Shown one piece after another: positions 4,648 to 28,549 of a DNA stretch of 64,000 nucleotides. The first letter of the stretch is position 1; every line of letters begins with the position of its first letter. A program made the position numbers and the translations under genes. The notes under the pieces are model-generated. The model worked only from the letters and a program-made list of their open reading frames with translations, did not search any database and was not told where the DNA came from. The stretch lies in sequence record PQ330092.1. One strand, 5' to 3'.

Positions 4648-7437
4648 ATGTTAAACAATAATATTGATAATATTGTACAACTTCTTTATGGGCATCACAA
4701 ATTTATTGAAAGAAATACTGGTGATACAATAGACCCAACAGTACAACATTATGTGGTGAATAATCAGGGTGTTTTGGCGAACAACCGTCATTTTATTAAC
4801 TATTCTGCAATGGAAGGTCAACCAAACGGTGACGGGACAACAGAAGGTCAAAGTCTATTAATTTTAGGATACATTTATGCGTATCTGGCAACAAATGATC
4901 CAATGTTTTTAGATAAAGCCAAATGGTACTGGGATGCATATCATCAGTACTTTTATGCTGGACGTGAATTACCAGATCCACCTACACCACTACAATGTAA
5001 CTGGATAGTTAATGCCAAAGAACCTATATTGGCTAACTGGCCTTTAGCTGATGATGGATGGCCTACACATGGTGGTTTCAAGGGTGTAGAATTTACATTT
5101 ACAAATGGACAATGTAAAATACCACATGGTGCACCTTATTATGGTCAGTTCTTGGATAAAGTAACATTTGCATTCAAAGGTGCTTTAGCATGGAACCAAA
5201 TAAATGCGTCAGTAAAAGCATTATTACCAGATGGTAGTGTTGATTGGGATACACCAGGTGAACAATATGATGTTGACTGGATTATCGATTTCATGGGTAG
5301 AAAAATCGACTGGGATGGTAATATTTTAGCAGAAGGTTTTGACGAATCTGAAAAAGGAACTGTTCAATTAAAGAATACAACAATTAATGGTGTATATAAA
5401 TTAAATTTTGCAAATCGTCAACCAGTAGAATATGGTGGTGTGATAATTCAACGAAATGAAATGCAACACAACCGCCCACTTCATGTTCCAATTGATTTGG
5501 AATTTGCGGATAACGCATCAGATGCAGAATTGTGGTTTAGTGATGCTTCTTATTTGTTATATAAAATAACAAAAGAAAGAAAACATTATTTGGGTTGGAA
5601 ATGTTCACTACTAACGTGTTATGCTTATGGTGATATTGACTCCAGAGATAAATTTTTCAGACAAAGTACAATTGTAACCACACCATTCACTGATGGTATT
5701 TCCTATGAATATTTTTATCCAAGTGATGCTATTGCTAAGTTTGGTAGAAATTCTCTAGGATATATTACTATCAGGCAAGACCAAAGTGCACAAAGTACAA
5801 TGGAACAACAAGCTATTTGGTTCAGGGTCAATGCTGATTCTAAATTACTTGTAGACTATGGTGGTGTATGTGATGATGGTAAGCCGTTATCATTTAAACC
5901 AGTACTGGAATTGTCAAAAACAAAAAATGACCATGATGTTGTTCGTTATCGTTGTGGCTTACCGGAAAGTAAAGACCAAAATATCACACATTCATTAACA
6001 CCTTTAAGTGCATTTGTTAGAGAAAAGAAAGCAGATGGTTCCCCTTATATAATTGCTGATAGTAGAATTGTTGTTCCTTATGGTGCAGCTACGTCCGAAA
6101 TGATATATAGTACTGATATATTAGTTACACGCCGCGATACCATTAATCAGTTAGTTTGTGGTGAAGATGATGGTGCTGTTATTGGATTTTGGCTATTAGC
6201 AACAAATAAGTCTGAAGTTAAATCTTTTACCTATCGTTCATATGAAGATGATTACAATATAAGAATTGTAGATGATAATGGTTGGAGATGGTGGTGGATG
6301 ATTCCTGCAACACACGGGGAATGGACTACAATCACACTAAGTCCCGATACATTACGTTTATCTGGGTATCAGCCAAATCATCCAAGTTCTGACCCAAGAC
6401 CAGATGCACCAGTTTATAGTGAACTAGAAGATATTACTATTTTACCTGATACAACCCCAGTAGATGGTGTTGCTGCAATAATTGATTGGTATTGTATTAA
6501 TGACATTCCAGAATTATACACGGATGCTGACGGTGATGACTATACTATGACATTTTCAATAACAATTGCAGGTGAATCACCATATACTGCACAGTTAGGG
6601 GATTGTGTAATCAAAGATTATTTGTTAAACTCATTGCATTACACACCAGGAACAATACCATTTTCTAACATCACTGACCCGTATGCGAACCAGTATTCAG
6701 GATGGCGTGGTTTACCGTATCCAGGTTATCAATATCCTGTGATATATTGTTTTAAAGACCAGCCAGTAGATAACACACGCTTAGGAAACATGTTAAGCTT
6801 TATGAAAGATTCCCAAACATGGTTTACTCAACAATTCGGTACTGTTGGTCCGTGTGCACAAGCATATGTTTGGAACCGCTGGGATAACTTAAAATATGGT
6901 GAACCAGATACATTTACTATGCTACATTGGGGTGATCAAGCATGGAGTGGGTATGAACCACGTGCGTTCTTTGGGGCTGCCAGAGCATGGCAAGAACTCG
7001 CAGAGAGAGGAATTGAACCACCAGCAGATCTTGTTGAATTTTGTGAGAATTGGATTCACTTTTTAATTCAATTTCAAAAAGATAATGATGGTCGTTCACC
7101 AACAATCTTCAATAAAGATGGCACAGTTGAAGGTCCAGATTGGGACTTTACAGGTCATATGTGTGGGTTGTGGTTAGCTGGGGCTTGTGCTGCTGGATTG
7201 GCTGGATGTAAAATAGAAGGTCTAACAACACTCGCTGATAACTTAGTTCTCGAACTTCAAAAGAATTATGTTATTGTAAATCCAGGTTCACCAATGAATG
7301 GTTCATGGAGTCCAGCAGTTAGAGAAGGTACTGATAATGGTATGTTTTTTGGTTTCTGGGCAGGTGAGATTATGCGTGGATTGGGATTATACTCAATGTA
7401 CCGCTTAAACACACCAAATCGTTTCCGTGATTTATAA
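4648..7437 (+). CDS. large glycoside hydrolase family 8-like (alpha/alpha toroid) protein with inserted beta-rich regions; probably virion-associated
   Basis: TTEGQSL..G..YA.LA.ND and NASDAELW match BcsZ/GH8 motifs TSEGQSY and NSASDGDVW; lies in a late-promoter operon. Confidence 0.6.
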   Translation: MLNNNIDNIVQLLYGHHKFIERNTGDTIDPTVQHYVVNNQGVLANNRHFINYSAMEGQPNGDGTTEGQSLLILGYIYAYLATNDPMFLDKAKWYWDAYHQYFYAGRELPDPPTPLQCNWIVNAKEPILANWPLADDGWPTHGGFKGVEFTFTNGQCKIPHGAPYYGQFLDKVTFAFKGALAWNQINASVKALLPDGSVDWDTPGEQYDVDWIIDFMGRKIDWDGNILAEGFDESEKGTVQLKNTTINGVYKLNFANRQPVEYGGVIIQRNEMQHNRPLHVPIDLEFADNASDAELWFSDASYLLYKITKERKHYLGWKCSLLTCYAYGDIDSRDKFFRQSTIVTTPFTDGISYEYFYPSDAIAKFGRNSLGYITIRQDQSAQSTMEQQAIWFRVNADSKLLVDYGGVCDDGKPLSFKPVLELSKTKNDHDVVRYRCGLPESKDQNITHSLTPLSAFVREKKADGSPYIIADSRIVVPYGAATSEMIYSTDILVTRRDTINQLVCGEDDGAVIGFWLLATNKSEVKSFTYRSYEDDYNIRIVDDNGWRWWWMIPATHGEWTTITLSPDTLRLSGYQPNHPSSDPRPDAPVYSELEDITILPDTTPVDGVAAIIDWYCINDIPELYTDADGDDYTMTFSITIAGESPYTAQLGDCVIKDYLLNSLHYTPGTIPFSNITDPYANQYSGWRGLPYPGYQYPVIYCFKDQPVDNTRLGNMLSFMKDSQTWFTQQFGTVGPCAQAYVWNRWDNLKYGEPDTFTMLHWGDQAWSGYEPRAFFGAARAWQELAERGIEPPADLVEFCENWIHFLIQFQKDNDGRSPTIFNKDGTVEGPDWDFTGHMCGLWLAGACAAGLAGCKIEGLTTLADNLVLELQKNYVIVNPGSPMNGSWSPAVREGTDNGMFFGFWAGEIMRGLGLYSMYRLNTPNRFRDL

Positions 7438-7438
7438 C

Positions 7439-7467
7439 TTGACATAGAAAAAGTAATTATGTATAAT
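7439..7467 (+). promoter_or_regulatory. sigma70-type promoter
   Basis: TTGACA-17 nt-TATAAT with TG extension. Confidence 0.85.
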
Positions 7468-7468
7468 C

Positions 7469-7498
7469 AGAGAACTTCATATGGAGTTCTCTTTTTTT
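7469..7498 (+). terminator. Rho-independent terminator for the upstream late operon
   Basis: agagaacttc-atat-ggagttctct then T6. Confidence 0.8.
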
Positions 7499-7511
7499 AT
7501 AAGGTGATAAA

Positions 7512-7931
7512 ATGTTAAATGAACGTATTAAAAATGCACTACATGTATTGAACCAAGAAGTAAATTCTATTGATAAAAGTACTGACCGTTATAAAGTAAT
7601 GCATGAAATCAAACAAGAATTGGAATCTATTAATAAGGGAGAATGGTGGTATCTTCAGCCCGAATATCAAACTCGTGAATTAAACGATGTTGAAAAAGAA
7701 ATTGTCAAATTCATCACTACTCGTTACTGTGATACATCAGAGAATGATGTATCAGCGAACTTCAATCTTACTAAATTGGAAGTCGAAGAAAAATTCAATT
7801 TTGATTGGCTTGATTGGCTTGAAATGGTCATGGAACTAGAAGAAAAATTCAATGTTGAAGTTGATGAAAAGTTCGAGAATAATGAAACTAAGCTGTATGA
7901 ACTAGCAGAACATATTCAAAAAATGCTGTAA
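7512..7931 (+). CDS. acyl-carrier-protein-like protein lacking the phosphopantetheine serine, with an N-terminal extension
   Basis: C-terminal 80 aa align by eye with AcpP: DWLDWLEMVMELEEKFNVEV vs [20 protein letters not shown]. Confidence 0.7.
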   Translation: MLNERIKNALHVLNQEVNSIDKSTDRYKVMHEIKQELESINKGEWWYLQPEYQTRELNDVEKEIVKFITTRYCDTSENDVSANFNLTKLEVEEKFNFDWLDWLEMVMELEEKFNVEVDEKFENNETKLYELAEHIQKML

Positions 7932-7984
7932 ACCTATACAATTGTATACTCTAAATAATATCATCAACTATAGGAGATATTATT

Positions 7985-8359
7985 ATGAGTATGTTAGAAA
8001 TAATTGTTTCAAAAATTCTGATTCCATTTTGGAAACCAATTTCTTTTGTATTATTGATTGGCGGTTCAGCTTATGCTGGTTGGGAAGCTAATACTTATTA
8101 CAGTGGCTATCAACAAAGCATAGAGCAACAAATAGCTAAAAAAGTTGATACCGCCTTGGATAAAATGCAACAAGAAAATGCAAAAAATTACCTTGAAACG
8201 AAAAAAATCATGGAAGATAATGCTAAAGTTATTGAAACAAAGGTTCCTTTTATTGTAGAACGTGAAGTTTATAAGAATGTATGTTTAGATGAAGATGGTG
8301 TAAAAGTACTGAATGAACTAAAACAAAATTCTCAAGCTGCGAGGAATAAATTCAAATGA
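7985..8359 (+). CDS. inner-membrane spanin (Rz-like)
   Basis: N-terminal TM helix, coiled-coil, C-terminal Cys; TAAATA at 7952; directly followed by a lipoprotein. Confidence 0.75.
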   Translation: MSMLEIIVSKILIPFWKPISFVLLIGGSAYAGWEANTYYSGYQQSIEQQIAKKVDTALDKMQQENAKNYLETKKIMEDNAKVIETKVPFIVEREVYKNVCLDEDGVKVLNELKQNSQAARNKFK

Positions 8360-8664
8360 AAAAATTATTAGTTCCGTTTATTTCTTTTTTAATTATAAGT
8401 GGATGTGCCGAACAAGTAAAACTACAATCCCCTGCACCAATTAAACAAGAAATTCTGTTAGAAAGATGTGATGATGATACACCTCTACCACAAAAAATTA
8501 TGATTGACAAAAATGGTTTTAAAGGTTATGATGGTGCAGAAATTCTTAAAGTACTTACTCGTTGGGATGCAGTCTACAATGAATGTGCTTTAAAACACGA
8601 CGCATTGATTAAAACTATTCGTGATTTACAAGGTAAAGATATTAAAATCAATATCAAGGAATAA
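8356..8664 (+). CDS. outer-membrane lipoprotein spanin (Rz1-like)
   Basis: Signal peptide with lipobox ISGC; Pro-rich; 4-nt overlap with i-spanin. Confidence 0.75.
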   Translation: MKKLLVPFISFLIISGCAEQVKLQSPAPIKQEILLERCDDDTPLPQKIMIDKNGFKGYDGAEILKVLTRWDAVYNECALKHDALIKTIRDLQGKDIKINIKE

Positions 8665-8665
8665 A

Positions 8666-9277
8666 ATGAACAAATATCATGTTTACTATACGACAAAATT
8701 ATCACTTCTTGAAGAATTAAATCAACGAAGTACTAAGATGAAACGCTACACTTTAAATGGTATTACTTTTCGATATTTCCCACAAAAAGTTCTTACTTTT
8801 GTTAAGAATCCAAAATGCGTGGCATGTGGGATTGAAGCTACTGAAGTACGCATTGAACGTTCATTATGTTCTGATCCAGTATATGGTAAACCACATTTAA
8901 ATGTATATGCTGTATGTGGTCTTTATGAAGTTTTAATGACAGTTGACCATAATCATCTGGCATCTAAGGGTGGACCTGATTTAGAGTCAAACTTTAATAC
9001 TATGTGCTCCAGATGTAATCAACTACGTTCGAATAAAACTGAAACAGTTGATGAGTTTCTTGAGAAAGTTAAAGGTCGTAATCTTCTCCAAGAACATATG
9101 AATAATTTCTTTAATGTACAAAAAAAGAAAAATAACATTGACAAGTCGAAACTACTAGAAGAACGTAGGTTACGTCAAGAATTATGGGAAACTGATCATC
9201 TATGGCATGTTCGAGAGTTTGGTCGTCATATGAAAGCTTTGAAAAAAGAACAGAAGAAATTGAATAAACATGATTGA
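8666..9277 (+). CDS. HNH endonuclease
   Basis: CVACG ... TVDHNHLASKGG..N...MCSRCNQLRSNK; start placed at ATG 8666 after AAGGA. Confidence 0.8.
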   Translation: MNKYHVYYTTKLSLLEELNQRSTKMKRYTLNGITFRYFPQKVLTFVKNPKCVACGIEATEVRIERSLCSDPVYGKPHLNVYAVCGLYEVLMTVDHNHLASKGGPDLESNFNTMCSRCNQLRSNKTETVDEFLEKVKGRNLLQEHMNNFFNVQKKKNNIDKSKLLEERRLRQELWETDHLWHVREFGRHMKALKKEQKKLNKHD

Positions 9278-9288
9278 TATGATATTAT

Positions 9289-9318
9289 AGGGACTTGAGT
9301 ATTCAAGTCCTTTTTTTT
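9289..9318 (+). terminator. Rho-independent terminator
   Basis: gggacttga-gtat-tcaagtcct then T-run. Confidence 0.85.
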
Positions 9319-9329
9319 GGAGAAAATAA

Positions 9330-9686
9330 ATGAAATCTAAAATCTTTTTACCACAATTAATGTGGCATCTAGCAGAGTTAGATGAAAATGATGAATATAC
9401 GGACTATGGTGCATGGGATGACAGTACTGAAACTTTTAAACCAGATGTAAAATATAAAATCATCTGCAATGAAAGCAAAGGACACAAAAGGTGGACTGAA
9501 GAATTTGATCTCGTATTTCTTGACATGAGCACAAATAAGTTTTATCATTGTAATTATGAACGAGGTTTAACAGAAGATAGACCAGTACAACCATTCAGTA
9601 CTGAAACTGATGGTATTAAGTGCAATGAAGTTTCTGTTACCAGAGAAGAAATTATCACTTATCGAACTTTGTGGAAATATTTGTAA
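9330..9686 (+). CDS. hypothetical protein
   Basis: GGAG SD; ORF track. Confidence 0.75.
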   Translation: MKSKIFLPQLMWHLAELDENDEYTDYGAWDDSTETFKPDVKYKIICNESKGHKRWTEEFDLVFLDMSTNKFYHCNYERGLTEDRPVQPFSTETDGIKCNEVSVTREEIITYRTLWKYL

Positions 9687-9687
9687 A

Positions 9688-10086
9688 ATGCTTAAAGAAT
9701 TAGATTTTTCAAACTTAGAAATTATCAGTGCTGTAAAAAACATTTCCGATATGGGAGATGAGAAAGCAGTTCTTGTTACTATTACTTTTGTAAAAGAAAA
9801 AGATAGCTATAGCCATTTAACTGGTATTGAAGAACTAATTCATAAAACCAATCTTGAGAATGATGGTAAACTCATCAAGCTTCAGGCTTCCTACACGCAA
9901 AAAACGTCAAATTTTATAGACCTAAATAATGTAGTCAAGGTGGTATACAATCATCCTGAACACACATATAGGAACACGACAAGAAATGAAAATGTTGCTA
10001 ACGATTCGAATATTATCGAAGATGTTGAATTCATAAACACAATTTTTGATCGTTGTTCTAAGGATTTAAAAAAAGTATACATGTAA
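9688..10086 (+). CDS. hypothetical protein
   Basis: ORF track; start moved to ATG 9688 just after the previous stop. Confidence 0.7.
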   Translation: MLKELDFSNLEIISAVKNISDMGDEKAVLVTITFVKEKDSYSHLTGIEELIHKTNLENDGKLIKLQASYTQKTSNFIDLNNVVKVVYNHPEHTYRNTTRNENVANDSNIIEDVEFINTIFDRCSKDLKKVYM

Positions 10087-10115
10087 TGGGACATTATATG
10101 TTCCAATGATATAAT
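10087..10115 (+). promoter_or_regulatory. promoter of the TGGGACA-N16-TATAAT class
   Basis: TGGGACA 10087-10093, TGA-TATAAT ending 10115; same layout at 21188 and 40200. Confidence 0.7.
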
Positions 10116-10119
10116 GTAT

Positions 10120-10636
10120 ATAGAAAATGACAACGGACATTGAAAAATGGACACTGAGAACCTACTTCTCTTGAAAATGTAAAGGATAGATGAGCTTTAC
10201 CGTTGTAGCGAACAGCAGAAGAAACCTGTTAGAGTACTGGCATTCAAACAAACACGATGTAAGACCACGAATCACGGCGACACGGCTGTATAAAGAACTC
10301 CGATAAGCATACAGAGAGTTCCTAGATAGATGTATAAGGTTCGCACCTTACCAGATTTGCTAAGGGAGTTCAAGGATAGCGGACGCAATTTTTACAAGAA
10401 AGTTGCGTCCAAAATTTGAGAACAAGTACTACTTTGATCGAATAGAGTTAGTACTGAGTGCTGTTGATGAAAAGACCAGCGACCGTTGCATATGACTGCG
10501 ATAGAGAGAAACCGAGCAACCCGCTTTCGCTCTCTAAATTTTGGTACAAGAAAGATCCGTCCAAAATTTGAGAAATTCGCAATTCGATAATATCCGATGC
10601 CATCATCGTCAAGAGAGACTTAATTGTCTCTTTTTT
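10120..10636 (+). ncRNA. candidate ~500-nt structured non-coding RNA (alternatively a transcription-primed origin)
   Basis: Own promoter and terminator, no SD-led ORF, more than ten stem-loops, 28/30 internal direct repeat, elevated G+C. Confidence 0.6.
10611..10636 (+). terminator. Rho-independent terminator closing the non-coding unit
   Basis: agagac-ttaatt-gtctct then T-run. Confidence 0.8.
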
Positions 10637-10776
10637 ATTACCTTCATTCCCCTGCGGGGGGATGTAATAGTCCTCAACAAATCCCGTCAAGTTTTTAAAG
10701 TACATTATCATTTTCAGAAGGAACTAGTTTACGAAGTAAACGCAGTGACTTCTTGAGTTACGAGAGAACGAAGTGA

Positions 10777-11205
10777 ATGAGTAACACAACGAAAATATCC
10801 GATAAATCCGAATTAACACAAATGTTATTCAAAGAATATTTTGAGTTTCAGATAAAAGACGAACATCAATTACCACAGCAATATTTGAAAAGAATTAAAG
10901 ATCCGTCAGTAATTACTAAAGAAACTAATTTTTATAATAGTATTTTGGATTTCGTTAAATCAGTTCATACAACAAGACCTATTGTAGTTTTGTTTTTTGA
11001 TAAATCTATTCCTTTAGTAGTTCCTGAAAATGTATTTTTTATTTCAGAAACTGATTTAAATAATCAAAGTACTGTAAGTAGATTAAGAAATTGCTTACTT
11101 GTAGTATGTGATTCTTCTTTGTATAATAACAGAATACTATGGGATAGAAGTAAACGCAATGCAGTTTCTGAAATGAATCCTGAAATTACCTTTATTATTA
11201 ACTAA
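10777..11205 (+). CDS. hypothetical protein
   Basis: ORF track; typical AT-rich phage composition. Confidence 0.7.
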   Translation: MSNTTKISDKSELTQMLFKEYFEFQIKDEHQLPQQYLKRIKDPSVITKETNFYNSILDFVKSVHTTRPIVVLFFDKSIPLVVPENVFFISETDLNNQSTVSRLRNCLLVVCDSSLYNNRILWDRSKRNAVSEMNPEITFIIN

Positions 11206-11237
11206 ATAATAAGAGAATAACTCTAAGGAGAGATATT

Positions 11238-11678
11238 ATGGAAGATATTAATGATTTACGACACGTAATGGACTTTATCGGAAGTACTGAAGAAGATAAT
11301 TCGTATGATGAAGTACTATTAACTTTTATTGAAAATAGTTTGTTTTTAAGTTCTGCTGCACATAACTGGCACTTACAATGTCATTTTTATACAAAGCATT
11401 TACAATTAGATGAACTATATAAAGAATTACCAGAATATGTAGACGCATTTGTTGAAGGTATCATGAATAATCGTGGTGCTTTACAAGTTGGAACTGGTAA
11501 TAGTTATCGTTTTACACCAATTGAAGATTGTGTACCAATTCTTGAAGAATATGTTGAGCAATGTAGAGCAATTCATGATATGCTTGAAGAATCAGGTGAT
11601 TACGGCAGTGTAAACACATTAGAAGATATTATGAGTTTTGTTGAAGGAACACTTTACAAACTTAAAGTTTTACAATAA
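11238..11678 (+). CDS. Dps/ferritin-like protein
   Basis: AHNWHLQC..Y.KH..LDELY.EL..YVD.FVE resembles Dps ferroxidase helices; AAGGAG SD; TAAATA at 11203. Confidence 0.7.
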   Translation: MEDINDLRHVMDFIGSTEEDNSYDEVLLTFIENSLFLSSAAHNWHLQCHFYTKHLQLDELYKELPEYVDAFVEGIMNNRGALQVGTGNSYRFTPIEDCVPILEEYVEQCRAIHDMLEESGDYGSVNTLEDIMSFVEGTLYKLKVLQ

Positions 11679-11685
11679 AATATAT

Positions 11686-11715
11686 GGAGAGTCATTGTGA
11701 CTCTCCTTTTCTTTT
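11686..11715 (+). terminator. Rho-independent terminator
   Basis: ggagagtca-ttg-tgactctcc then ttttctttt. Confidence 0.85.
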
Positions 11716-11726
11716 GGAGAAATAAA

Positions 11727-12344
11727 ATGAAATCTCATGATTTAGCAAAATTACTACTATCTCAACCAAATCTAGAAATTTATCATTATGATGCAGAGAG
11801 TGACTTGCATTATCAGAATTTTGATAATAAATTAATGGTCACCCCATCTGGCATTTTCACAACGGTAAAACCCACATCAGTTTCTGAAAATGTACTTACA
11901 CCATACGAAACCCCGCTCTTGGGTCATGTACAAATTTTCTTTAAGGATGGTACTATTACTCCAAAATTGGAGGGTTCATCTATTCAAACTGTTCTTAACT
12001 TAGAATCTGGGTTGATATTTAACATTCCTTATGAAAAGCCAATTGTTTTATTAGGTAAAAATCAATCAGCACCATCAGGGAATCAAAATGCTGTTTGGTA
12101 TACACCCGATGATATTGATTTCATTTCTGTACTGACAGAATATGAACCTAATACTTGGCATGGAACATGGGAAACTATGTCGTATGATGAAGCAATTGAA
12201 TGTGGTAAAAATTTAGTTAAAATGTTATTTCCACAAAAAGAAGAACTTTCACAAGAACAAATTGATTCATTTTCTAAAGATTTTCCTGATTCTGAATTCA
12301 ATGTAAAAGTATCACCTTCTATGATTGATAAAATTAAAAAATAA
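11727..12344 (+). CDS. hypothetical protein, paralogue of 13080..13664
   Basis: GGAG SD before ATG 11727; MKSHDLAKLLLSQPNLEIYH N-terminus. Confidence 0.8.
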   Translation: MKSHDLAKLLLSQPNLEIYHYDAESDLHYQNFDNKLMVTPSGIFTTVKPTSVSENVLTPYETPLLGHVQIFFKDGTITPKLEGSSIQTVLNLESGLIFNIPYEKPIVLLGKNQSAPSGNQNAVWYTPDDIDFISVLTEYEPNTWHGTWETMSYDEAIECGKNLVKMLFPQKEELSQEQIDSFSKDFPDSEFNVKVSPSMIDKIKK

Positions 12345-12356
12345 AAGAGGTTGAAC

Positions 12357-12710
12357 ATGAGTGATTACCGCGTAACATCTGGACTAATGGCACGTCTTAT
12401 TGAAGCAGTTCCTGAAGATGATTATGAAGCTATTTCAGATCGTCTTTTTGACGCAGATTCTAAACTTCATATTACATATGATGGTGCATTGATTTACAGT
12501 ACTGATATTGATATGTCTAGTTATGAATTTGAGATTTCTTTTGGTAACAAACTAACTACTGAAGAATTCGCTCGAAAATGTGAGCGTGAAGGATTCTGTA
12601 TTGATATTAGTTCAGTTCAGCCATATACATCACTGTGGTATGATGGTGCTGATAGTCCAATGTCTACTACATCTTTACAGGATTTTCTAAATGCAAATCA
12701 AAAAGATTAA
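12357..12710 (+). CDS. hypothetical protein
   Basis: AGAGG SD, ATG 12357. Confidence 0.75.
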   Translation: MSDYRVTSGLMARLIEAVPEDDYEAISDRLFDADSKLHITYDGALIYSTDIDMSSYEFEISFGNKLTTEEFARKCEREGFCIDISSVQPYTSLWYDGADSPMSTTSLQDFLNANQKD

Positions 12711-13083
12711 ATTCCACCAGCATTGTTCTATACATGAATGTGATGATTGTGGTATACAAATGAGTGACATTTATACAGTTTCCTGTAAAGGTTTCAAATT
12801 CACTCACGGTGAACCTGCTTATTGTTATGGTACAGAAGAAGGTGATATCGAAGTAGTACTGAAAGAATTGTTCCAGTACTTGCAAAGTGTAGGTCATGAT
12901 GTTACAATACCCACATATTATGAAGATGATTATGATGCACATGTAGAAGAAAATACATATTATAATCAATTCGTTTATGGTAATGGTTTTATCACATACC
13001 TACATGAGAATGGTATTGAGGTAAAAACTAAGTACACCAGTGATGATTATGATGATGATAATTCTATGGAGATTGAAGATTGA
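12691..13083 (+). CDS. hypothetical acidic protein with N-terminal Cys/His cluster
   Basis: HQHCSIHECDDCG; ORF track. Confidence 0.7.
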   Translation: MQIKKIKFHQHCSIHECDDCGIQMSDIYTVSCKGFKFTHGEPAYCYGTEEGDIEVVLKELFQYLQSVGHDVTIPTYYEDDYDAHVEENTYYNQFVYGNGFITYLHENGIEVKTKYTSDDYDDDNSMEIED

Positions 13084-13664
13084 AAGCAAAAGACTTAGCA
13101 GCACTGTTGTTGCAGAATCCTGAAATGGAAGTGTATCATGAGCACATGCACATTGATGACATGTGTGACGCTTATTATTCACCAGAAAATGTGTCTGGTA
13201 TTGAAATTACCCCTAGTGGAGTATTCATCAGTACTAAACGTATTGATTATAATTCTCAGCAAGAAATCAAAACTCCACATAATAAACCTCGCATTGGTGC
13301 TATTGACCTAGTATTTCATCAGGACCGTTTGGTGGAATATGATGAAGACGATGGTACTACCCGAACTGATGTTGAGAATGTTGTTTTTCGTTTTTATAAT
13401 GCATACGAAGACCCAACTACTGGAGAAGATTTCTTCCGTGAGCTATTAGAGGATGGAGAAGTTTATGGTCAGGATGGTACGGTTTTTGTACTGGACCCTA
13501 ACTATGAGCCAGATCACAATACATGGCAATTCTATACACCAGAAGATGTAATGGAAGTTAAAGTACTTACTGATCTTGACGATAATTGGAATCCTATGTA
13601 TACTTCAATGACATATGAAGAAGCGAAAGAATACTTCGTTTCTAAACTAAACATTACAAAATAA
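13080..13664 (+). CDS. hypothetical protein, paralogue of 11727..12344
   Basis: KAKDLAALLLQNPEMEVYH; TPSGVF; MTYEEA. Confidence 0.75.
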   Translation: MKAKDLAALLLQNPEMEVYHEHMHIDDMCDAYYSPENVSGIEITPSGVFISTKRIDYNSQQEIKTPHNKPRIGAIDLVFHQDRLVEYDEDDGTTRTDVENVVFRFYNAYEDPTTGEDFFRELLEDGEVYGQDGTVFVLDPNYEPDHNTWQFYTPEDVMEVKVLTDLDDNWNPMYTSMTYEEAKEYFVSKLNITK

Positions 13665-13681
13665 TAAGGATTCACAAATTT

Positions 13682-13963
13682 ATGAAAATTGTTGCAAGTG
13701 CATGGATGAAACTACCAGATGGTACAACTGCTTTTGAAGAATATGGCTTTGTTGAAAGTGTCGATGAATTAAAGCGTTTCAAGTGTGAAAATGATGATGA
13801 TGTTTTTGATATTGTATTTGTATATCATCATATTCCTAATGATACTGATTATGAACATTATTATTATCATCCTGATTTGTTGGAAACACTTGTATGCGAC
13901 AACTATCATGAAATTGATGAAAATACAGCTTTACTAATGTTGAGTACCGTATCTCCGGTATAA
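13682..13963 (+). CDS. hypothetical protein
   Basis: AAGGA SD; ORF track. Confidence 0.7.
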   Translation: MKIVASAWMKLPDGTTAFEEYGFVESVDELKRFKCENDDDVFDIVFVYHHIPNDTDYEHYYYHPDLLETLVCDNYHEIDENTALLMLSTVSPV

Positions 13964-13971
13964 GGAGTAAT

Positions 13972-14451
13972 ATGTATAATCTTATAATTATCCGCGAACC
14001 ATATGAATCTGACAACAGTTCAACTGATGGTGAGGTTTTAGTATATCAAAGTTATGAACAAAGTGGCATTGAACATGAATTAAAAGATTATTTACGTCAA
14101 CATATATATCTATATCGTACAGAACCACGTGAACAGTATGGAGATATAATGTTTATCGTAACTCATAATGGTGCAGTAATTGAACATGTAAATATGACAA
14201 ATAACATGTATTTTCATAATTACACTGATACGTCTAAAGAATTAGGAAACGATTTCAAGTCTGTTTTCGATGCATTGCGTATCAATTTTTTTAAAAATGA
14301 CAAATTCTGTACTGATATTAGATTAGAAGAAGCAAATACAAAAAAGAAACTTTCTCGAAAATACGAGAGTGATAGAAAAAAAGAACAAGAGATTCAGCGT
14401 TTACACGAATTGATGAAAAAATACCCTAATGAGGTACAACATGGCTCTTAG
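13972..14451 (+). CDS. hypothetical protein
   Basis: AAGGAG SD; ORF track. Confidence 0.75.
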   Translation: MYNLIIIREPYESDNSSTDGEVLVYQSYEQSGIEHELKDYLRQHIYLYRTEPREQYGDIMFIVTHNGAVIEHVNMTNNMYFHNYTDTSKELGNDFKSVFDALRINFFKNDKFCTDIRLEEANTKKKLSRKYESDRKKEQEIQRLHELMKKYPNEVQHGS

Positions 14452-14779
14452 AGGTTCAAATCAATATAAATGTATTGCAGAGATCAGGAAGAAAGATGGA
14501 ACACTTGTAGACCGAGCATTGAAGCAAGAATATAAAGAATTACGTGATGTGGTACATAATGATAGTTATGGTGGGATGCGTCGTCAAAAAATTTATGAAT
14601 ATCTAAAGAAAGGTTTAGAAATTCAGGTTAATGGTCTTCATTGCATTCAAACAAAAAACGATCCTGATATTCTACGTTTGTTGAAAGAAGATAAGATTGA
14701 AATGTTTAATGTTCCTATTTCATTCTATGGTAATAAACTAAAATGTAAGCATACTTTCTTGAGGATTAAAAATGGTTGA
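14441..14779 (+). CDS. hypothetical basic protein
   Basis: GAGG SD before ATG 14441. Confidence 0.7.
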   Translation: MALRGSNQYKCIAEIRKKDGTLVDRALKQEYKELRDVVHNDSYGGMRRQKIYEYLKKGLEIQVNGLHCIQTKNDPDILRLLKEDKIEMFNVPISFYGNKLKCKHTFLRIKNG

Positions 14780-14996
14780 TTCATTTATGAAAAAAATCTT
14801 TAAAAAATTACTATCTGGATTTGAAAAAGCAGTAAGTCTTATTTTCAGTTCAGTTGTAATGGTTATTACAGTACTGGCGTTTTCTCTAGTACTGCATTTT
14901 GTACCATTCTGGTTAATCTTTATTGTACTTATTGCTCTGCTAGGTGCACATGTTTATTATGTTTACCGTGACGCATTGGATGATGATAACGATTAA
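14772..14996 (+). CDS. small two-TM membrane protein
   Basis: Long hydrophobic stretch SLIFSSVVMV...ALLGAHVYY; GAGG SD. Confidence 0.7.
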   Translation: MVDSFMKKIFKKLLSGFEKAVSLIFSSVVMVITVLAFSLVLHFVPFWLIFIVLIALLGAHVYYVYRDALDDDND

Positions 14997-15041
14997 ATGT
15001 ATTTGACCTCACTATGTGGGGTCTTTTTTAAGGAAAATTAT

Positions 15042-15494
15042 ATGCTTATAGAAACAGAAACATTTAAGCGTTTTATTGACGTATGTCGTGATACGTGTTT
15101 TTGTTATCTTTCATCACAAGAACAGTTCGATGCAATGAGTGATGTGTTAGGTTATCGCCGTTCGGTATTGATGTATTTTGATGGTCCTTTGATTGAAGTT
15201 CATGATGATGTGTATTCCCTACAATATGTATCAATTAACAATGCGTTCATTTTTATTGCTGACTCGTACTCAATTGTAGTTGAGGAACGTGGTAAAGGTA
15301 TACCAACAACACACTATATTGATTGTCAAAGAACTGATTGTGTTTATAGTTCTGGACTAATACAAACACCAATTCCATATCCTAGCATTTATATAAACAC
15401 ACTCCATCAAGAAATTATTGAGTACTGTAATAGTATTTCTGATACAGATACACAGTATTTTCCTATTGTATTATTGAAAGGAGTTAGAACATGA
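15042..15494 (+). CDS. hypothetical protein
   Basis: AAGGA SD before ATG 15042; terminator-like hairpin at 15005-15029 upstream. Confidence 0.7.
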   Translation: MLIETETFKRFIDVCRDTCFCYLSSQEQFDAMSDVLGYRRSVLMYFDGPLIEVHDDVYSLQYVSINNAFIFIADSYSIVVEERGKGIPTTHYIDCQRTDCVYSSGLIQTPIPYPSIYINTLHQEIIEYCNSISDTDTQYFPIVLLKGVRT

Positions 15495-15880
15495 GATGGC
15501 GTAAACGACACGTAAAAAGATTTGATAAAATAATCAAAAAATATTACTCACATAAGTTAGATCCAATCATACTTCAACTAAGAAGTAGTATGTTTGATAG
15601 ACGTTTTCCACAGTGTTTAGAATCGTACAGTCGTAAACGTTACAAGAATGAATACCTGGTATATCGTTATGATTTATCAGAATTCTTTTTGAATACTCGT
15701 GTATCTGTACCCATCAGACTGTACTCAAGGGTAAAACGAAGTAGGGTTCAAGATATTACATATGGATATCTTATGATTGAAATCGACGACCTCAATGAAA
15801 AAACTGGCAGAAATTACAGTACTTTATGTCTGGAAAACCATGATTCAATAAAAAGAATCATAGAAGAGTTGGGAAAGTGA
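15491..15880 (+). CDS. hypothetical basic protein
   Basis: ATGA overlap, AGGAG SD. Confidence 0.7.
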   Translation: MRWRKRHVKRFDKIIKKYYSHKLDPIILQLRSSMFDRRFPQCLESYSRKRYKNEYLVYRYDLSEFFLNTRVSVPIRLYSRVKRSRVQDITYGYLMIEIDDLNEKTGRNYSTLCLENHDSIKRIIEELGK

Positions 15881-15903
15881 GATTTTTAGTGCTATAATTG
15901 GAG

Positions 15904-16254
15904 ATGAGTATGAAATACATCGATAAAGGTACAGTGGAGACACAGTACTGGAATATCCATATTGCTGGTGATATTCAAACAGCAAGAGAATACACAAGAA
16001 AATTTGCGTTTAAGCATGGCTTTTGTGTACAATTAATTCCCTGTGAATATATCTACACTGGTGGTCTTGAAAGTGGGATGTGTGCTCGTATTATTCAGTA
16101 CCCACGCTTTCCAAAAGAAGAAGTATATCTCAACCGAGATGTATTAAACTATGCAAAGGGTTTAGCTGAAGAGTTGTGTCAAAAGAGCTTTACTATAGAG
16201 CGAAATAATGATACAATTTATTATGAAAGTGATGAACCTTTACACAAGAAATAA
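15904..16254 (+). CDS. conserved hypothetical protein
   Basis: YIYTGGLESG...IIQYPRFP motif; start uncertain (15904 or 15910). Confidence 0.7.
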   Translation: MSMKYIDKGTVETQYWNIHIAGDIQTAREYTRKFAFKHGFCVQLIPCEYIYTGGLESGMCARIIQYPRFPKEEVYLNRDVLNYAKGLAEELCQKSFTIERNNDTIYYESDEPLHKK

Positions 16255-16265
16255 AAGGAAAATAT

Positions 16266-16397
16266 ATGAATGGACTAAAGAAATTTGGTAAAGATTTTCT
16301 AAAATGTATACGCTATACATATGATGCAAACCCAGAAATGACTGCTATTGTGGGTGTGTTTATTACACTTGTTGTATTAAGTTTTATTGTGGTGTAA
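16266..16397 (+). CDS. 43-aa single-TM membrane protein missed by the ORF track
   Basis: AAGGA SD; MNGLKKFGKDFLKCIRYTYDANPEMTAIVGVFITLVVLSFIVV. Confidence 0.6.
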   Translation: MNGLKKFGKDFLKCIRYTYDANPEMTAIVGVFITLVVLSFIVV

Positions 16398-16401
16398 AAG
16401 T

Positions 16402-16605
16402 ATGATTGAAATCAATGCTGATATCTATTGTAGTGCAGCACCAAATTACTTCATTTATGCTTTGAGTACATTTGGTGAAACTGACGGTGAAACTTTTGTT
16501 TTAGTAGATAATACTACATGGTACAAAACAAGTAATAAAATTCCTAAAGACGTTTTGGAAACATATGTTCGTATTGAAAATAAAAACATATATGTAAATT
16601 TATAG
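16402..16605 (+). CDS. hypothetical protein
   Basis: ATG 16402 just after the previous stop. Confidence 0.6.
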   Translation: MIEINADIYCSAAPNYFIYALSTFGETDGETFVLVDNTTWYKTSNKIPKDVLETYVRIENKNIYVNL

Positions 16606-16612
16606 GTAAAAT

Positions 16613-17023
16613 ATGATTGAAATGGAAGGAACTCTGGTGTATGATCCAGACCGTGGCACTATGAAAAAGAAGAAGGACTTCTGGTTAGTACTACAACTTC
16701 CATTACAGTTGGTTCGATACTACCAGTACTTCATCAGAACTGACTTACATATTGATATTAAAGACCCACAATGGGGAGCACATGTCAGTATCGTTCGTGG
16801 TGAAGTGCCACCAAATCCAGAGTACTGGAAAAAGTACGATGGAATGAAAGTAAAGATAAAGTTCAATCCTTGTATTGAGATAGTAAAAGATAAAAAGAAT
16901 CCAGGTTCATTCTTTATCATTGAATTTGAAGATGATTTCATCACACATATTAGAAATGAACTAGGACTACCAACCAAGTACTTTAAATATCACATCACTG
17001 TAGGTAGAACCTATTACGATTAA
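16613..17023 (+). CDS. 2H phosphoesterase-family protein
   Basis: Two HxS/T motifs (AHVSIV, YHITVG) about 75 aa apart. Confidence 0.7.
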   Translation: MIEMEGTLVYDPDRGTMKKKKDFWLVLQLPLQLVRYYQYFIRTDLHIDIKDPQWGAHVSIVRGEVPPNPEYWKKYDGMKVKIKFNPCIEIVKDKKNPGSFFIIEFEDDFITHIRNELGLPTKYFKYHITVGRTYYD

Positions 17024-17191
17024 TGTGGTTTTTATGGTAAATATATCTTGTAATAAAATAAAAATATGCTATACTACTTAAACATTTGAAAAGAACGTTT
17101 TTGTACTGTAGAAAGTCCGATGAGGCTTTTGCAAATGGCCTCTTTGCCATCTTTGTGATTGCCCATCTTAACAATCAACAAAGGAGGCGTT

Positions 17192-18118
17192 TTGAAACAA
17201 GCGAAAAAAGCACTGAAAACTAAGACTACTTATGGTGTTCTAGTTTGCACAGTACTTGTCGCTGCGATTGGATTTTATGGTTTTTCTCAAAATGATCGTG
17301 TATCATCATCGGACGAAAGTCAGGTACACAATTTAAAACCACAAGTTACGCAAATTCAAAAGCAGGAATTACCAAAGGTAGAAATATCAAAGGATGTTCC
17401 ACGCGGCGAGAAGCATTATACGGTTCAACCTGGTGATAGTTATTATTCTATTGCTAAAAAGTTTAAACCTAAAAATGTACAACTTGAAGAGTATGTTATT
17501 TTGTTGAAAAATATCAATTTAAATGCTACTCTTCATACTTCTCAGGGTATCTTTATCCCAACAAAAGAGGATTTGAAGAACGTATTGTTACCAGATGTGA
17601 CTGTACTGTTTGATTATAATGATCCAGAAATTGTCAATCACATCAAAGAAGCTGAAGGTTCAATTGAATTTCAGTCCAAGAACAAACGCCGTTTACTTGG
17701 TGGGAAAGTCGGAGTTCCTTTCCACAATTCTAAATTTCATCCCTACAAGGACATGAAAGGTAATTATACAATAGGTTATGGGCATTATTTGGGTAGAAAA
17801 GAATCTGATGCGATTAAGTACAGAAACGGTATTACCAAAGCTCAAGCCAATAAACTTTTAATGCAAGATATGAAAAGAACATATAATGACTTTTTATTAT
17901 TGATGCAGAAAAAAGAAGCAGTAAATCTGACCAAAGAACAACAACGTATTCTTTATGAAATGTCCTATACAATGGGTGTTGATAAATTAGCAACGTTTAA
18001 TAAACTTTGGAAAAGTGTGAAAAATGATAACCCTAAGAAATTTAAAAAAGAAATTATGAATTCCTTATGGTATCGTCAAGTTACAAACCGAGCAGATTTG
18101 TTGTTAAGTTCACTCTAA
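17192..18118 (+). CDS. membrane-anchored LysM plus T4-type (GH24) lysozyme
   Basis: TTG start after AAGGAGG; TM helix; LysM HYTVQPGDSYYSIAKKF; KEAEG...YKDMKGNYTIGYGH and SLWYRQVTNRA as in T4 lysozyme. Confidence 0.8.
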   Translation: MKQAKKALKTKTTYGVLVCTVLVAAIGFYGFSQNDRVSSSDESQVHNLKPQVTQIQKQELPKVEISKDVPRGEKHYTVQPGDSYYSIAKKFKPKNVQLEEYVILLKNINLNATLHTSQGIFIPTKEDLKNVLLPDVTVLFDYNDPEIVNHIKEAEGSIEFQSKNKRRLLGGKVGVPFHNSKFHPYKDMKGNYTIGYGHYLGRKESDAIKYRNGITKAQANKLLMQDMKRTYNDFLLLMQKKEAVNLTKEQQRILYEMSYTMGVDKLATFNKLWKSVKNDNPKKFKKEIMNSLWYRQVTNRADLLLSSL

Positions 18119-18134
18119 AAAAGGAAGGTGAAGT

Positions 18135-18467
18135 ATGCTAAATCTAAATATTCAAGGCAACGTTGATATCACTCCAGCAATCCAAGATGCTATTTACAAT
18201 GAAGCAAAAAGTCTGGATAAGTACCGTACTTCTTCAGTACTAGACATTGGTGTTCATGTTAAGAAAGAGCATAAAACTCAATATGCTGTAACTTTAACTG
18301 CTGGTAGTAAATCAGTAACTGCTGATGATGCTGATTTGTATAAAGCAATTGTTGAATCTTTTGATAAGATGGAAACTGTATTCAGTAAAGACAAAAGCAT
18401 TAAATTACACCGCCGAAACCATCCAGAACACCCAGTTCTTGATGATTTGACAGAAAACGAAGAGTAA
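18135..18467 (+). CDS. hpf: ribosome hibernation promoting factor (HPF/RaiA, S30AE family)
   Basis: LNIQGNVDITPAIQDAI...DLYKAI..FDKME aligns with E. coli HPF LNITGNNVEITEALREFV...DMYAAIDGLIDKL. Confidence 0.75.
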   Translation: MLNLNIQGNVDITPAIQDAIYNEAKSLDKYRTSSVLDIGVHVKKEHKTQYAVTLTAGSKSVTADDADLYKAIVESFDKMETVFSKDKSIKLHRRNHPEHPVLDDLTENEE

Positions 18468-18480
18468 TATATATATACTA

Positions 18481-18510
18481 AAGGGACAGATTAATTCTGT
18501 CCCTTTTCTT
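18481..18510 (+). terminator. Rho-independent terminator
   Basis: aagggacaga-ttaat-tctgtccctt then T-rich tail. Confidence 0.85.
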
Positions 18511-18524
18511 ATGGAGTTTTAATT

Positions 18525-18920
18525 ATGAATTATTCCTGGATGGAAATTGTAAAATCTCTAATATCAACACATGATATGGACTTACCTGAACACCTAGTTA
18601 TTAATAGATGGTACTATCCATATCCAGATAACCGTTGTGTTGGGATTGGATTTTTTATTAATGAAAAATCTCAATATATTGGATTAATTGAAGATTATAC
18701 AAAAACCAACATTGCGTTCTCTATTGAGTTGAATGTAGATCACATAAAATACTACACCAATAAAATGGACGAAGACGATGGTGATGTTATAATTCCAGCA
18801 GAAATAGACGAAGCTTCATTTTTTCAGTTATCATTAATTCATGATGTATCTGATATTACTTATGATAATGTGAAAGACCTTTTTATATTGTACAATAAAC
18901 TGTATAATTACTTTTTGTAA
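18525..18920 (+). CDS. hypothetical protein with E..FFQ.S.I.D motif
   Basis: GGAG SD; DEASFFQLSLIHD. Confidence 0.75.
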   Translation: MNYSWMEIVKSLISTHDMDLPEHLVINRWYYPYPDNRCVGIGFFINEKSQYIGLIEDYTKTNIAFSIELNVDHIKYYTNKMDEDDGDVIIPAEIDEASFFQLSLIHDVSDITYDNVKDLFILYNKLYNYFL

Positions 18921-18933
18921 TGGAGATAAATTT

Positions 18934-19932: not shown

Positions 19933-19943
19933 TTGGAGGCATT

Positions 19944-20066: not shown

Positions 20067-20067
20067 T

Positions 20068-28517: not shown

Positions 28518-28523
28518 AACACT

Positions 28524-28549
28524 AAGGGAACCTTTTGGTTCCCTTTTTT
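28524..28549 (+). terminator. Rho-independent terminator
   Basis: aagggaacc-tttt-ggttccctt then T-run. Confidence 0.9.

Follow-up and report, generated by a model that had tools for sequence, protein, structure and literature searches.

The window analysed here, a 64,000-nt stretch of sequence record PQ330092.1, is a PBECO4/121Q-type (Asteriusvirus) Escherichia coli jumbo phage and is 100% identical to phage JP4 over 9600-11300. Between the ORFs 9610-10086 and 10777-11205 lies a gap at 10087-10776, which is the only sizeable non-coding stretch, as the two other ORF-poor stretches of at least 250 nt (16255-16612 and 28518-28848) hold short ORFs. The gap carries a conserved extended -10 promoter, an RNA of about 515 nt, an intrinsic terminator and, behind the terminator, conserved DNA boxes and hairpins. 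Its parts, all on the + strand, are as follows:

10087-10115 (+), promoter, with a -35-like TGGGACA (10087-10093), a 13-nt spacer and an extended -10 TGATATAAT (10107-10115); the predicted start is about 10122.
10122-10636 (+), core RNA of about 515 nt, from the predicted start to the end of the terminator T-run.
10130-10206 (+), 5' domain, in which the long-range helix ACAACGG (10130-36) with CCGTTGT (10200-06) has its second strand in the loop of helix GCT/AGC (10194-96/10207-09) and is therefore a pseudoknot; it encloses a variable hairpin (10138-10151) and helix 10167-72/10182-86 with the conserved loop GAAAAYGUA.
10212-10289 (+), helices ACAGC/GCTGT (10212-16/10285-89) and CTGT/ACGG (10226-29/10274-77), which enclose a highly conserved asymmetric internal loop (AGAWGAAAC / CAAUGCG) and a variable insert.
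10295-10361 (+), hairpin GAACTC/GAGTTC (10295-300/10316-21), whose loop AGC (10306-08) pairs with GCT (10359-61) just before the invariant AAGGGAG to form a pseudoknot, and hairpin TAAG/CTTA (10335-38/10347-50).
10381-10410 (+), optional hairpin module 1, GGACGCAA/TTGCGTCC, which together with 10537-10569 makes the 38-nt internal direct repeat (10387-10422 against 10537-10574) and is present only in a subset of members.
10424-10588 (+), 3' domain, with hairpin 10424-36/10443-55, whose loop ATCGAA (10437-42) pairs with TTCGAT (10583-88) as a pseudoknot; hairpin 10460-63/10477-80; GTTGC (10485-89) with GCAAC (10516-20), a pseudoknot; TGCGA/TCGCA (10497-501/10577-81); GAGAG/CTTTC (10504-08/10524-28); and TCT/AGA (10531-33/10571-73) with the optional hairpin 10537-10569.
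10600-10612 (+), box 1 (CCATCATCGTCAA), just upstream of the terminator.
10614-10636 (+), intrinsic terminator T1, AGAGAC-TTAATT-GTCTCT plus T6.
10643-10668 (+), conserved G+C hairpin TTCATTCCCC-TGCG-GGGGGGATG, with core pairs 10648-52/10657-61.
10678-10690 (+), box 2 (CAAATCCCGTCAA).
10691-10776 (+), downstream module, consisting of an A+T-rich stretch (10691-10722), a hairpin GAAG-TAAACGCAGTGA-CTTC (10733-10752) with the conserved loop RAACGNAGUGA, and a second AACGAAGTGA at the start of the next ORF.

The promoter is conserved across the family, as 74 of 77 distinct members have an extended -10 and 58 of 77 have a TGRRAY -35-like motif, a type that matches the "divergent RpoD-like" TGAAACG promoter reported for CBB and GAP32 (PMC5259590). 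T1 was not listed by an automated terminator scan, but its stem changes compensatorily in homologues; it is absent from the C-type clade and from the copies in bacterial islands described below. G+C content is 39-44%, against 26-35% in the flanks, and the folding z-score is -3.45, with 0 of 100 shuffles folding as well.

Several GenBank records, including that of JP4, annotate three to four ORFs of 29-62 aa across this region. However, none of five small ORFs is intact in any of 34 homologues and most aligned lengths are not multiples of three, indicating that the gap is not coding and that these annotations are spurious. A match to a known RNA family or ribosome-profiling evidence of a translated ORF had been named in advance as grounds for giving up the novelty or the non-coding nature of the element; no known family matches and no ORF is conserved. 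A covariance-model scan against Rfam 15 (RNase P, tmRNA, 6S, group I/II introns, GOLLD, ROOL, HEARO, OLE, raiA and others) returned no hit at the gathering threshold in the whole window, only chance-level hits with E of 0.9 or more on 9900-10900, and no relevant hit on 13 other copies; weak C/D-box snoRNA hits are chance, and the CUGA/GAUGAG motifs are not conserved in the window copy. ARAGORN found no tRNA or tmRNA gene in the window. Literature searches on jumbo phages with structured, non-coding or satellite RNA found no description of this element, and the CBB and UE-S1 papers do not mention it.

Compensatory base changes among homologues, another criterion set beforehand, are strong. On 35 diverse homologues, collected by BLAST and two motif patterns without building a covariance model, 95.3% of cells are paired over 71 pairs (38-46% in slid controls), 50 of the 71 pairs show compensatory changes, and the covariation score is 0.544 against at most 0.10. 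Four long-range pairings are seen, three of them firmly supported. In the 5' pseudoknot 6 of 7 pairs are compensatory; all 6 pairs of GAACTC/GAGTTC are compensatory and 2 of 3 in its loop pairing; the ATCGAA/TTCGAT pseudoknot has 6 of 6 pairs compensatory and is 99.5% paired; and GUUGC/GCAAC becomes GUUAC/GUAAC in three members and GUCAU/AUGAC in copy D of phage 121Q. The original prediction of a promoter- and terminator-bounded, structured non-coding unit in this gap is thus confirmed as an observation. Among the stems it had drawn by hand, covariation supports acaacg/cgttgt (10130-36/10200-06), gaactc/gagttc, taagg/cctta, agtacta/tagtact and tct/aga, as well as ggacgcaa/ttgcgtcc and aaattttgg/ccaaaattt, which are optional hairpin modules. 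It does not support aacag/ctgtt, for which the real pair is ACAGC/GCTGT (10212-16/10285-89), agagag/ctctct, for which the real pair is GAGAG/CTTTC (10504-08/10524-28), or gtaaag/ctttac and ttgca/tgcga, as other partners are favoured. Its central reading, an undescribed, stand-alone and highly structured ncRNA transcription unit of a Rak2-like jumbo phage, is supported by these results, although it missed the pseudoknots, the multi-copy nature of the family, the conservation beyond the terminator and the copies in bacterial chromosomes.

Conservation continues for about 140 nt past the terminator. The G+C hairpin is 100% paired and its only variation is U.G to C.G on the + strand; it therefore folds as + strand RNA, which implies read-through of T1. 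The two 13-nt boxes flanking the terminator and this hairpin co-vary by identity, with all four variable positions equal in 63 of 68 distinct elements and alignment columns 685=774 and 688=778 agreeing in 35 of 35. The agreement arose through several independent changes, for example T to A in both boxes of the element labelled L037 only, and parallel divergence in the element L081. No complementary third site was found, either by mutual information over all columns of -470..+420 or by per-sequence complement scans. A pairing of the invariant GAUGAG (10190-95) with CUCGUC of box 2 or AUCGUC of box 1 was rejected, because there is no covariation, 12 of 35 are unpaired at one position, and the double change in L037 breaks the pairing. 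Box variants differ between paralogues of one genome, so that the constraint acts within each element, which is what pairing of one box with the opposite strand of the other would require.

The window copy (copy A) is one of a family of modules of about 700 bp. Rak2-like jumbo phages keep 4-5 diverged copies at conserved genome positions: 3-5 places per record were found, 4-5 loci per IMG/VR jumbo contig, and 121Q copies lie at 192.7, 247.4 and 326.7 kb, plus copy D. Variable stems are shared between copies of one genome, as window copy A and JP4 copy B have the same H5 hairpin and group together. The same module is the conserved core, next to a CI-like repressor, of integrative islands of about 10 kb in Enterobacterales (Serratia, Enterobacter, Buttiauxella and E. 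coli chromosomes), including complete chromosomes of S. fonticola and E. coli. RNA plus CI is the conserved unit, whereas integrases and defence cargo are swapped around between islands. Two islands, of E. chinensis and E. coli, were delimited and scanned, others being viewed in part, and neither has recognisable replication or packaging genes; the E. chinensis island consists of a serine integrase, the RNA, CI/Cro, DarTG and a resolvase, without Rep, primase or terminase. One S. fonticola island has the RNA beside two ParB-like genes. No phage copy is more than 73% identical to an island copy (the best is 72.8%, in XaC1), and the module has no match among 72,556 plasmids in PLSDB with either the phage or the island copy as query.

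With an integrase but no recognisable transfer, replication or packaging genes of their own, the delimited islands resemble minimal phage satellites (PICMI) and the integrase-plus-defence islands transduced by a jumbo phage (I55/JPTI55, PMC12595487), their cargo being DarTG and a dual-OB/DUF488/DUF4326 cluster. No shared cis element was reported for those systems, while here the shared element is a structured RNA module. Transfer by a phage has not been shown for the present islands, for which no experimental data on helper-dependent induction or replication exist. The module is the only sequence found shared between islands and phages.

What the analysis demonstrates is the composition of the module, its repeated presence in Rak2-like phages and its place as the island core, and the existence and novelty of the RNA class are near certain; its function, by contrast, is inferred. 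The reading we tentatively prefer is a transcription-dependent, origin-like element that the islands borrow. A transcription-primed origin was the alternative offered by the original prediction, and it becomes the leading functional idea, although unproven, once the post-terminator boxes, the multi-copy distribution and the island copies are seen. In this view, the RNA would be made from the phage-type promoter (TGAAAC-like -35 plus extended -10) and fold, and part of the transcription would pass T1. The box-1 segment of the RNA would then re-anneal to the template strand of the identical box 2 beside the A+T-rich stretch, giving a locus-specific RNA-DNA hybrid that the T4-like phage replisome would use to start DNA synthesis. 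Several copies would give the 350-kb genome several origins, and islands that carry the module would be replicated into concatemers, and so mobilised, when such a phage infects.

On the one hand, this reading accommodates the identity of the boxes, the cis conservation past T1 and the multiple copies. T4-like phages use several R-loop origins driven by phage-specific (middle) promoters, and the -35 type of the module is the one enriched upstream of DNA-synthesis genes in CBB (PMC5259590); the extended -10 could, however, also work with host sigma-70 alone, so the promoter does not decide whether a phage-specific class is involved. On the other hand, no experiment bears on replication, and the hybrid itself was not assayed, the evidence for it being only the indirect evidence of box identity without an RNA partner. 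The fold, with several pseudoknots and many invariant unpaired bases, is far more elaborate than any known primer RNA and looks like a ribozyme or RNP scaffold. Most copies have a good terminator between box 1 and box 2, and box 1 is not at the RNA 3' end. The box region is pyrimidine-rich in the RNA and local GC skew is negative, which is unfavourable for stable R-loops, and GC skew was not informative as an origin signal. The two boxes differ at the central position and in the spacing of the YC dinucleotide, so any hybrid would be bulged. A+T is 77% in the 45 nt after box 2 against 69% further downstream, a modest enrichment that leaves the presence of an unwinding element undecided. The absence from plasmids indicates that the module is not an autonomous replicon, and no known helper phage carries a copy close to those of the islands.

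Among the known systems, the ColE1-type RNA II primer (with RNA I) is likewise an untranslated, structured transcript of about 500-550 nt from a strong promoter upstream of the place where it would act, with no initiator protein needed on the element and with a G-run and a C-run near the proposed hybrid site. However, there is no sequence or Rfam relationship, the present fold is pseudoknotted rather than a series of hairpins, a terminator lies before the proposed hybrid site, and without plasmid occurrence the module would depend on phage functions. No antisense RNA I-like unit was recognised by eye, without a systematic scan of homologues; the minus-strand TTGACG at box 2 looks like a -35, but no usable -10 was seen at the right distance. 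The T4 origins oriF (uvsY) and oriG (gene 34) would share with it several origins per genome in a T4-related replication system, a possibly phage-specific promoter class and a stretch downstream that is here only modestly A+T-rich, but they are not homologous to each other, need no structured RNA, and have the unwinding element directly after the promoter, whereas here the candidate element lies about 570 nt away, after a conserved RNA fold and two identity-matched boxes. In non-RepA extrachromosomal mycobacteriophage prophages, an initiator ncRNA next to partition genes (parABS-proximal) replaces a Rep protein (PMC7157519), which the S. fonticola arrangement with ParB-like genes parallels; that system supports autonomous plasmid replication in the host, its RNA is single-copy, the organisms are unrelated, and no homology was tested or is expected.

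The main rival, possible and only slightly less likely, is a trans-acting large "ornate" RNA, that is, a scaffold, RNP component, ribozyme or sponge, possibly oligomeric like ROOL or GOLLD, which would be released at the terminator and needed in high dose, with the downstream boxes being secondary, for example processing or stability signals. The compact pseudoknotted fold with many invariant loops, the discrete terminator of most copies, the strong extended -10 promoter and the 4-5 copies with shared variable stems favour it, and abundant lncRNAs of unknown role are known in ICP1 (PMC7567579) and PA5oct (PMC7318152). ROOL, GOLLD and these lncRNAs are large, phage-borne, probably abundant RNAs with complex folds and unknown roles. 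ROOL and GOLLD, however, are usually single-copy and near tRNAs, in Firmicutes, and none of these RNAs is known to have matched DNA boxes or copies in integrative islands. Size, pseudoknots and phage location agree with a ROOL/GOLLD-type RNA, but no tRNA gene lies in the window, no sequence or model match was obtained and oligomerisation was not examined, so that assignment to this type is neither made nor excluded. PA5oct ncRNA002 and a neighbouring gap show none of the family motifs, so no expression evidence could be borrowed from its RNA-seq-defined lncRNAs. A trans-acting RNA does not explain the identity covariation of two boxes with no RNA partner, the conservation beyond the terminator, the loss of the terminator in a whole clade, or why the module is the fixed core of islands that otherwise carry only integrase, repressor and cargo.

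A cis-regulatory leader, either a giant attenuator or a processive antitermination RNA of the put or EAR kind that would set how much transcription passes T1 into the downstream genes, is unlikely. In islands it would read antisense into the CI repressor gene and so trigger induction. Copies A, C and D are followed by co-directional genes, T1 is optional, the U.G/C.G variation shows that the hairpin after T1 is transcribed in the + sense, and in islands the RNA converges on the CI-like gene. However, copy B is followed by genes on the opposite strand and the island copies also face convergent genes, so the module is not always followed by co-directional genes; known antitermination RNAs are 65-120 nt, no antiterminator pairing that co-varies with T1 was found, and the box identity is unexplained. 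Still less likely is a packaging or recombination handle, either a site (or RNA, like phi29 pRNA) used by the terminase or portal, or a homology patch through which excised islands co-integrate into replicating phage DNA. The lack of packaging genes in the delimited islands, the module as the only sequence found shared between islands and phages, and the T4-type recombination functions encoded beside copy B fit this, but relatives (UE-S1 and CBB) have unique terminal repeats and the 4-5 copies are internal and far apart, which does not suit a pac site; the island copies are too diverged from any phage copy for efficient homologous recombination, and mere homology would not preserve compensatory changes within them. 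A cluster of small protein genes can be dismissed, given the broken ORFs and the substitutions that are compensatory for RNA helices.

The element adds a new class of large, pseudoknotted RNA from well-studied hosts (E. coli, Salmonella, Klebsiella, Erwinia and Yersinia phages), which is easy to study with laboratory strains. Identity covariation between an RNA segment and a downstream DNA site, with no complementary partner, is an unusual evolutionary signature and calls for a mechanism whichever reading is right. In its boldest form, which is possible but less likely than not, the module would be a portable, protein-free, "self-addressing" origin, in which a folded RNA finds its own gene's downstream DNA through a short sequence it shares with it, nucleates an R-loop and recruits the jumbo-phage replisome. 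Giant phages would use several such modules as their origins, and minimal defence islands would have captured one as their only requirement for being amplified and carried by these phages, which would make it the first cis element known to link jumbo phages with their satellites. Replication origins of Rak2-like jumbo phages are unknown, and a repeated, testable candidate makes that question directly approachable. How small islands without replication or packaging genes exploit virulent or jumbo phages is likewise an open problem, for which a shared RNA-DNA module, which may be what lets such islands use these phages, is a concrete handle.

Window 9600-11300 is 100% identical to Escherichia phage JP4, 90-99.9% identical to about 30 PBECO4/121Q-type (Asteriusvirus) jumbo phages, and the window contains no N. 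The 690-nt gap between ORF 9610-10086 and ORF 10777-11205, on which the original prediction rested, is real, and it is the only sizeable non-coding stretch in the 64 kb. The only other ORF-poor stretches of at least 250 nt (16255-16612 and 28518-28848) both hold short ORFs of about 40-70 aa, and thus look like ordinary small genes rather than RNA genes. Just upstream of the gap, within 7985-9277, lie an Rz-like spanin ORF (7985-8359), an overlapping lipoprotein-like ORF (8356-8664) and an HNH endonuclease ORF (8621-9277), as annotated in JP4; the HNH gene is not linked to the RNA in other copies. On the other side, a Dps-like ('starvation-inducible DNA-binding') gene (11238-11678) is followed by a perfect bidirectional terminator hairpin (11686-11706). 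The located features of the gap, apart from the RNA helices, are as follows:

10087-10093, TGGGACA, the first element of the promoter
10107-10115, TGATATAAT, the extended -10 of the promoter
10600-10612, CCATCATCGTCAA, box 1, just before the terminator
10614-10636, AGAGAC/GTCTCT plus T6, the terminator T1
10643-10668, a G+C hairpin, folding as + strand RNA
10678-10690, CAAATCCCGTCAA, box 2, after the G+C hairpin
10733-10752, a hairpin with the loop RAACGNAGUGA

The terminator was not listed by an automated terminator scan, but its stem varies compensatorily in homologues. The G+C content is 39-44% against 26-35% around the gap, and the 515-nt transcript folds with z = -3.45. A search for tRNA and tmRNA genes found neither, and no Rfam 15 family was matched; a match to a known family had been named in advance as the outcome that would have removed the novelty of the RNA.

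A sensitive BLAST search against 50,697 phage records detected the non-coding part (window about 10157-10689) at 66-73% identity in other genera of Rak2-like jumbo phages, including GAP32, CBB, fHe-Yen9-04, BF, XbC2, 7t3, Munch and the Klebsiella phages, whereas the flanking ORFs did not match. The non-coding part is what is conserved. Each genome has 3-5 matching places, and motif scans of IMG/VR gave 4-5 loci per jumbo-phage contig, although only one copy lies in the window. In BF and 7t3 the best copy lies between the endonuclease VII and baseplate-hub genes, where JP4 and GAP32 have a copy too. Phage 121Q has copy C at 192.7 kb, copy A (the window's) at 247.4 kb, copy B at 326.7 kb and a fourth, more diverged copy D, which occurs in 121Q-type genomes (positions 300-830 of the extracted sequence L101) and whose genome coordinate was not determined. 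Copy C sits upstream of a hypothetical gene and a Dam methylase, both in E. coli phages and in Xanthomonas phage XaC1, and the positions are therefore old. Variable stems (the H5 hairpin, window 10295-10321, and the terminator stem) are identical or nearly identical between copies A and B of the same genome, as seen by comparing the window with JP4 copy B, but differ between genomes, which indicates concerted evolution or gene conversion among copies.

Compensatory base changes among homologues, the absence of which had been set out beforehand as counting against the RNA, were found. An alignment of 23 members, and then one of 35 diverse members, gave RNAalifold structures in which 44 of 67 and 41 of 68 pairs, respectively, keep pairing through double changes. 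A curated structure of 14 helices was then scored on the 35 sequences: 95.3% of cells are paired, against 38-46% when the 3' partners are slid; 50 of 71 pairs have compensatory changes; the covariation score is 0.544 against at most 0.10; and 0 of 500 shuffles reach any measure. The fold is pseudoknotted, with four long-range pairings:

10130-36, the 5' strand, with the loop of helix 10194-96/10207-09; this is the acaacg/cgttgt stem of the original prediction, with 6 of 7 pairs compensatory
the loop of hairpin 10295-10321, with GCU 10359-61
10437-42, the loop AUCGAA, with UUCGAU 10583-88; all 6 pairs are compensatory and 99.5% of cells are paired
10485-89, GUUGC, with GCAAC 10516-20; this becomes GUUAC/GUAAC in three members and, by a triple compensatory change, GUCAU/AUGAC in 121Q copy D

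Between the helices lie long invariant stretches, namely GAAAAYGUA, AGAWGAAAC / CAAUGCG, GAUAGACAUAUAAGG, AAGGGAG, CGACCGUU and GAAACNGRGYAACCCGCUUYCG. Several of the stems drawn in the original prediction are confirmed, and four are replaced by other partners; its interpretation of the gap as an undescribed structured RNA gene is supported. None of five small ORFs, some of them annotated in GenBank, is intact in any of 34 homologues. A mechanical 87-aa minus-strand ORF (window 10448-10711) and several annotated ORFs of 29-62 aa that overlap the RNA are not conserved and should be removed from annotations.

Conservation does not stop at T1. All members have the G+C hairpin and the motif CAACAAAYCNCGTCA, after which come an A+T-rich stretch and the hairpin with the loop RAACGNAGUGA; A+T is 77% in the 45 nt after the motif. 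A whole clade, the C type, which includes 121Q copy C and XaC1, lacks the T1 hairpin but keeps everything else. In the G+C hairpin the only variation is U.G to C.G read on the + strand; it therefore folds as + strand RNA, which implies that some transcription passes T1.

The variable positions of box 1 and box 2 are the same in both boxes of an element. Alignment columns 685 and 774 (three states) agree in 35 of 35 members, columns 688 and 778 agree in 35 of 35, and the base after GTCA agrees in 32 of 35, while the single T to A change in CGTCA occurs in both boxes of one member (L037), but not in its 86%-identical relative (L038). Over 68 distinct elements, 63 have all four positions identical. 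The most divergent member (L081, positions 1088-1800, from metagenome contig JACCDR010487790, the context of which was not examined) has changed its boxes in parallel, to AAACCCCRTTWA, and has three similar boxes (AAACCCCGTTTA, AAACCCCATTAA and AAACCCAGTTAG) in place of two CGTCA boxes. On the tree of the elements, this needs several independent paired changes. No column anywhere from -470 to +420 is complementary to the boxes, and per-sequence scans found no consistent partner. The central base and the spacing of the YC dinucleotide are not matched between the boxes. Identity without a complement on the same strand is what is expected if one box, as RNA, pairs with the opposite DNA strand of the other; alternatively, the two DNA sites may have to synapse, and we do not choose between the two. 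Box variants differ between paralogues of one genome, and therefore a genome-wide protein cannot explain the match.

A strict pattern scan of one genome per GTDB species found the module in seven records, including the complete chromosome of Serratia fonticola GTA-SR07, Enterobacter chinensis, Serratia sp. 2723, an Enterobacteriaceae isolate and a Buttiauxella MAG, and many metagenomic contigs also carry it. In S. fonticola it lies beside a large serine recombinase and two ParB/RepB-like genes, next to rof and tilS. In E. chinensis the whole island (L085, positions 5900-16350) is about 10.5 kb, is inserted in ppdD, and consists of a serine integrase, the RNA, a convergent CI-like S24 repressor, a Cro-like gene, a membrane protein, an LprI-domain protein, a small resolvase, and DarT-DarG with a UvrD-like helicase. 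In 2 of 5,426 complete E. coli genomes a similar ~10-kb island (L087, positions 9900-20400, in E. coli LR-29-1) sits next to ffs, with an IS-disrupted tyrosine integrase, a dual-OB/DUF488/DUF4326 cluster and the same kind of resolvase; the small serine resolvases of the two islands share 73% amino-acid identity. No replication initiator, primase or terminase was recognised in these two islands, the ones that were delimited. A TPP riboswitch in the bacterial flank of one island locus (L035, positions 5385-5481) is unrelated to the RNA. Across the loci, the RNA plus the CI-like gene is the conserved unit, while serine or tyrosine integrases are exchanged. The island copies keep all helices (they are part of the alignment designated A2) and nest within the C-type phage clade, but they are at most 73% identical to any sequenced phage copy, and the module is absent from 72,556 plasmids.

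Of 77 distinct elements, 74 have TGnTAYAMT, and 58 have TGRRAY about 17 nt upstream, most often TGAAACG or TGAAACA. This is the 'divergent RpoD-like' promoter described for CBB and GAP32, which in CBB is concentrated upstream of DNA-synthesis genes (PMC5259590). The island copies have it as well.

Neither Rfam nor the literature searched contained a description of the element, and GenBank records either leave it blank, call it a repeat_region (UE-S1) or annotate spurious small ORFs. The PA5oct lncRNAs are not homologous. We therefore treat it as a new RNA class, for which no function is assigned beyond the tentative readings below.

Taken together, our analysis demonstrates a new, multi-copy, pseudoknotted RNA gene, a conserved cis region behind it, and its presence as the core of small integrative islands. 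That the module is an origin-like element is inferred from these data, and we hold this reading only tentatively. Precedents are ColE1 RNA II, T4 oriF and oriG, and the initiator RNA next to parABS in mycobacteriophage prophages (PMC7157519). Integrase-plus-defence islands can indeed be moved by jumbo phages, although the paper describing this reports no shared element (PMC12595487). On the other hand, the fold is far more elaborate than a primer needs, a terminator usually separates the boxes, the local RNA is pyrimidine-rich with negative GC skew, the A+T enrichment is modest, and nothing in this analysis is experimental. A trans-acting ornate RNA, ROOL/GOLLD-like in kind but not in sequence, is likewise doubtful and only slightly less favoured, a leader or antitermination role is unlikely, and a packaging or recombination handle is more unlikely still. 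Four things together favour the origin-like reading: the several copies per genome in a phage with T4-type replication and recombination genes; a promoter of the class linked to replication genes; an RNA segment matched to a downstream DNA site beside an A+T-rich stretch; and the capture of the module by islands that have an integrase, a repressor, a multimer resolvase or ParB-like genes, but no recognised initiator.
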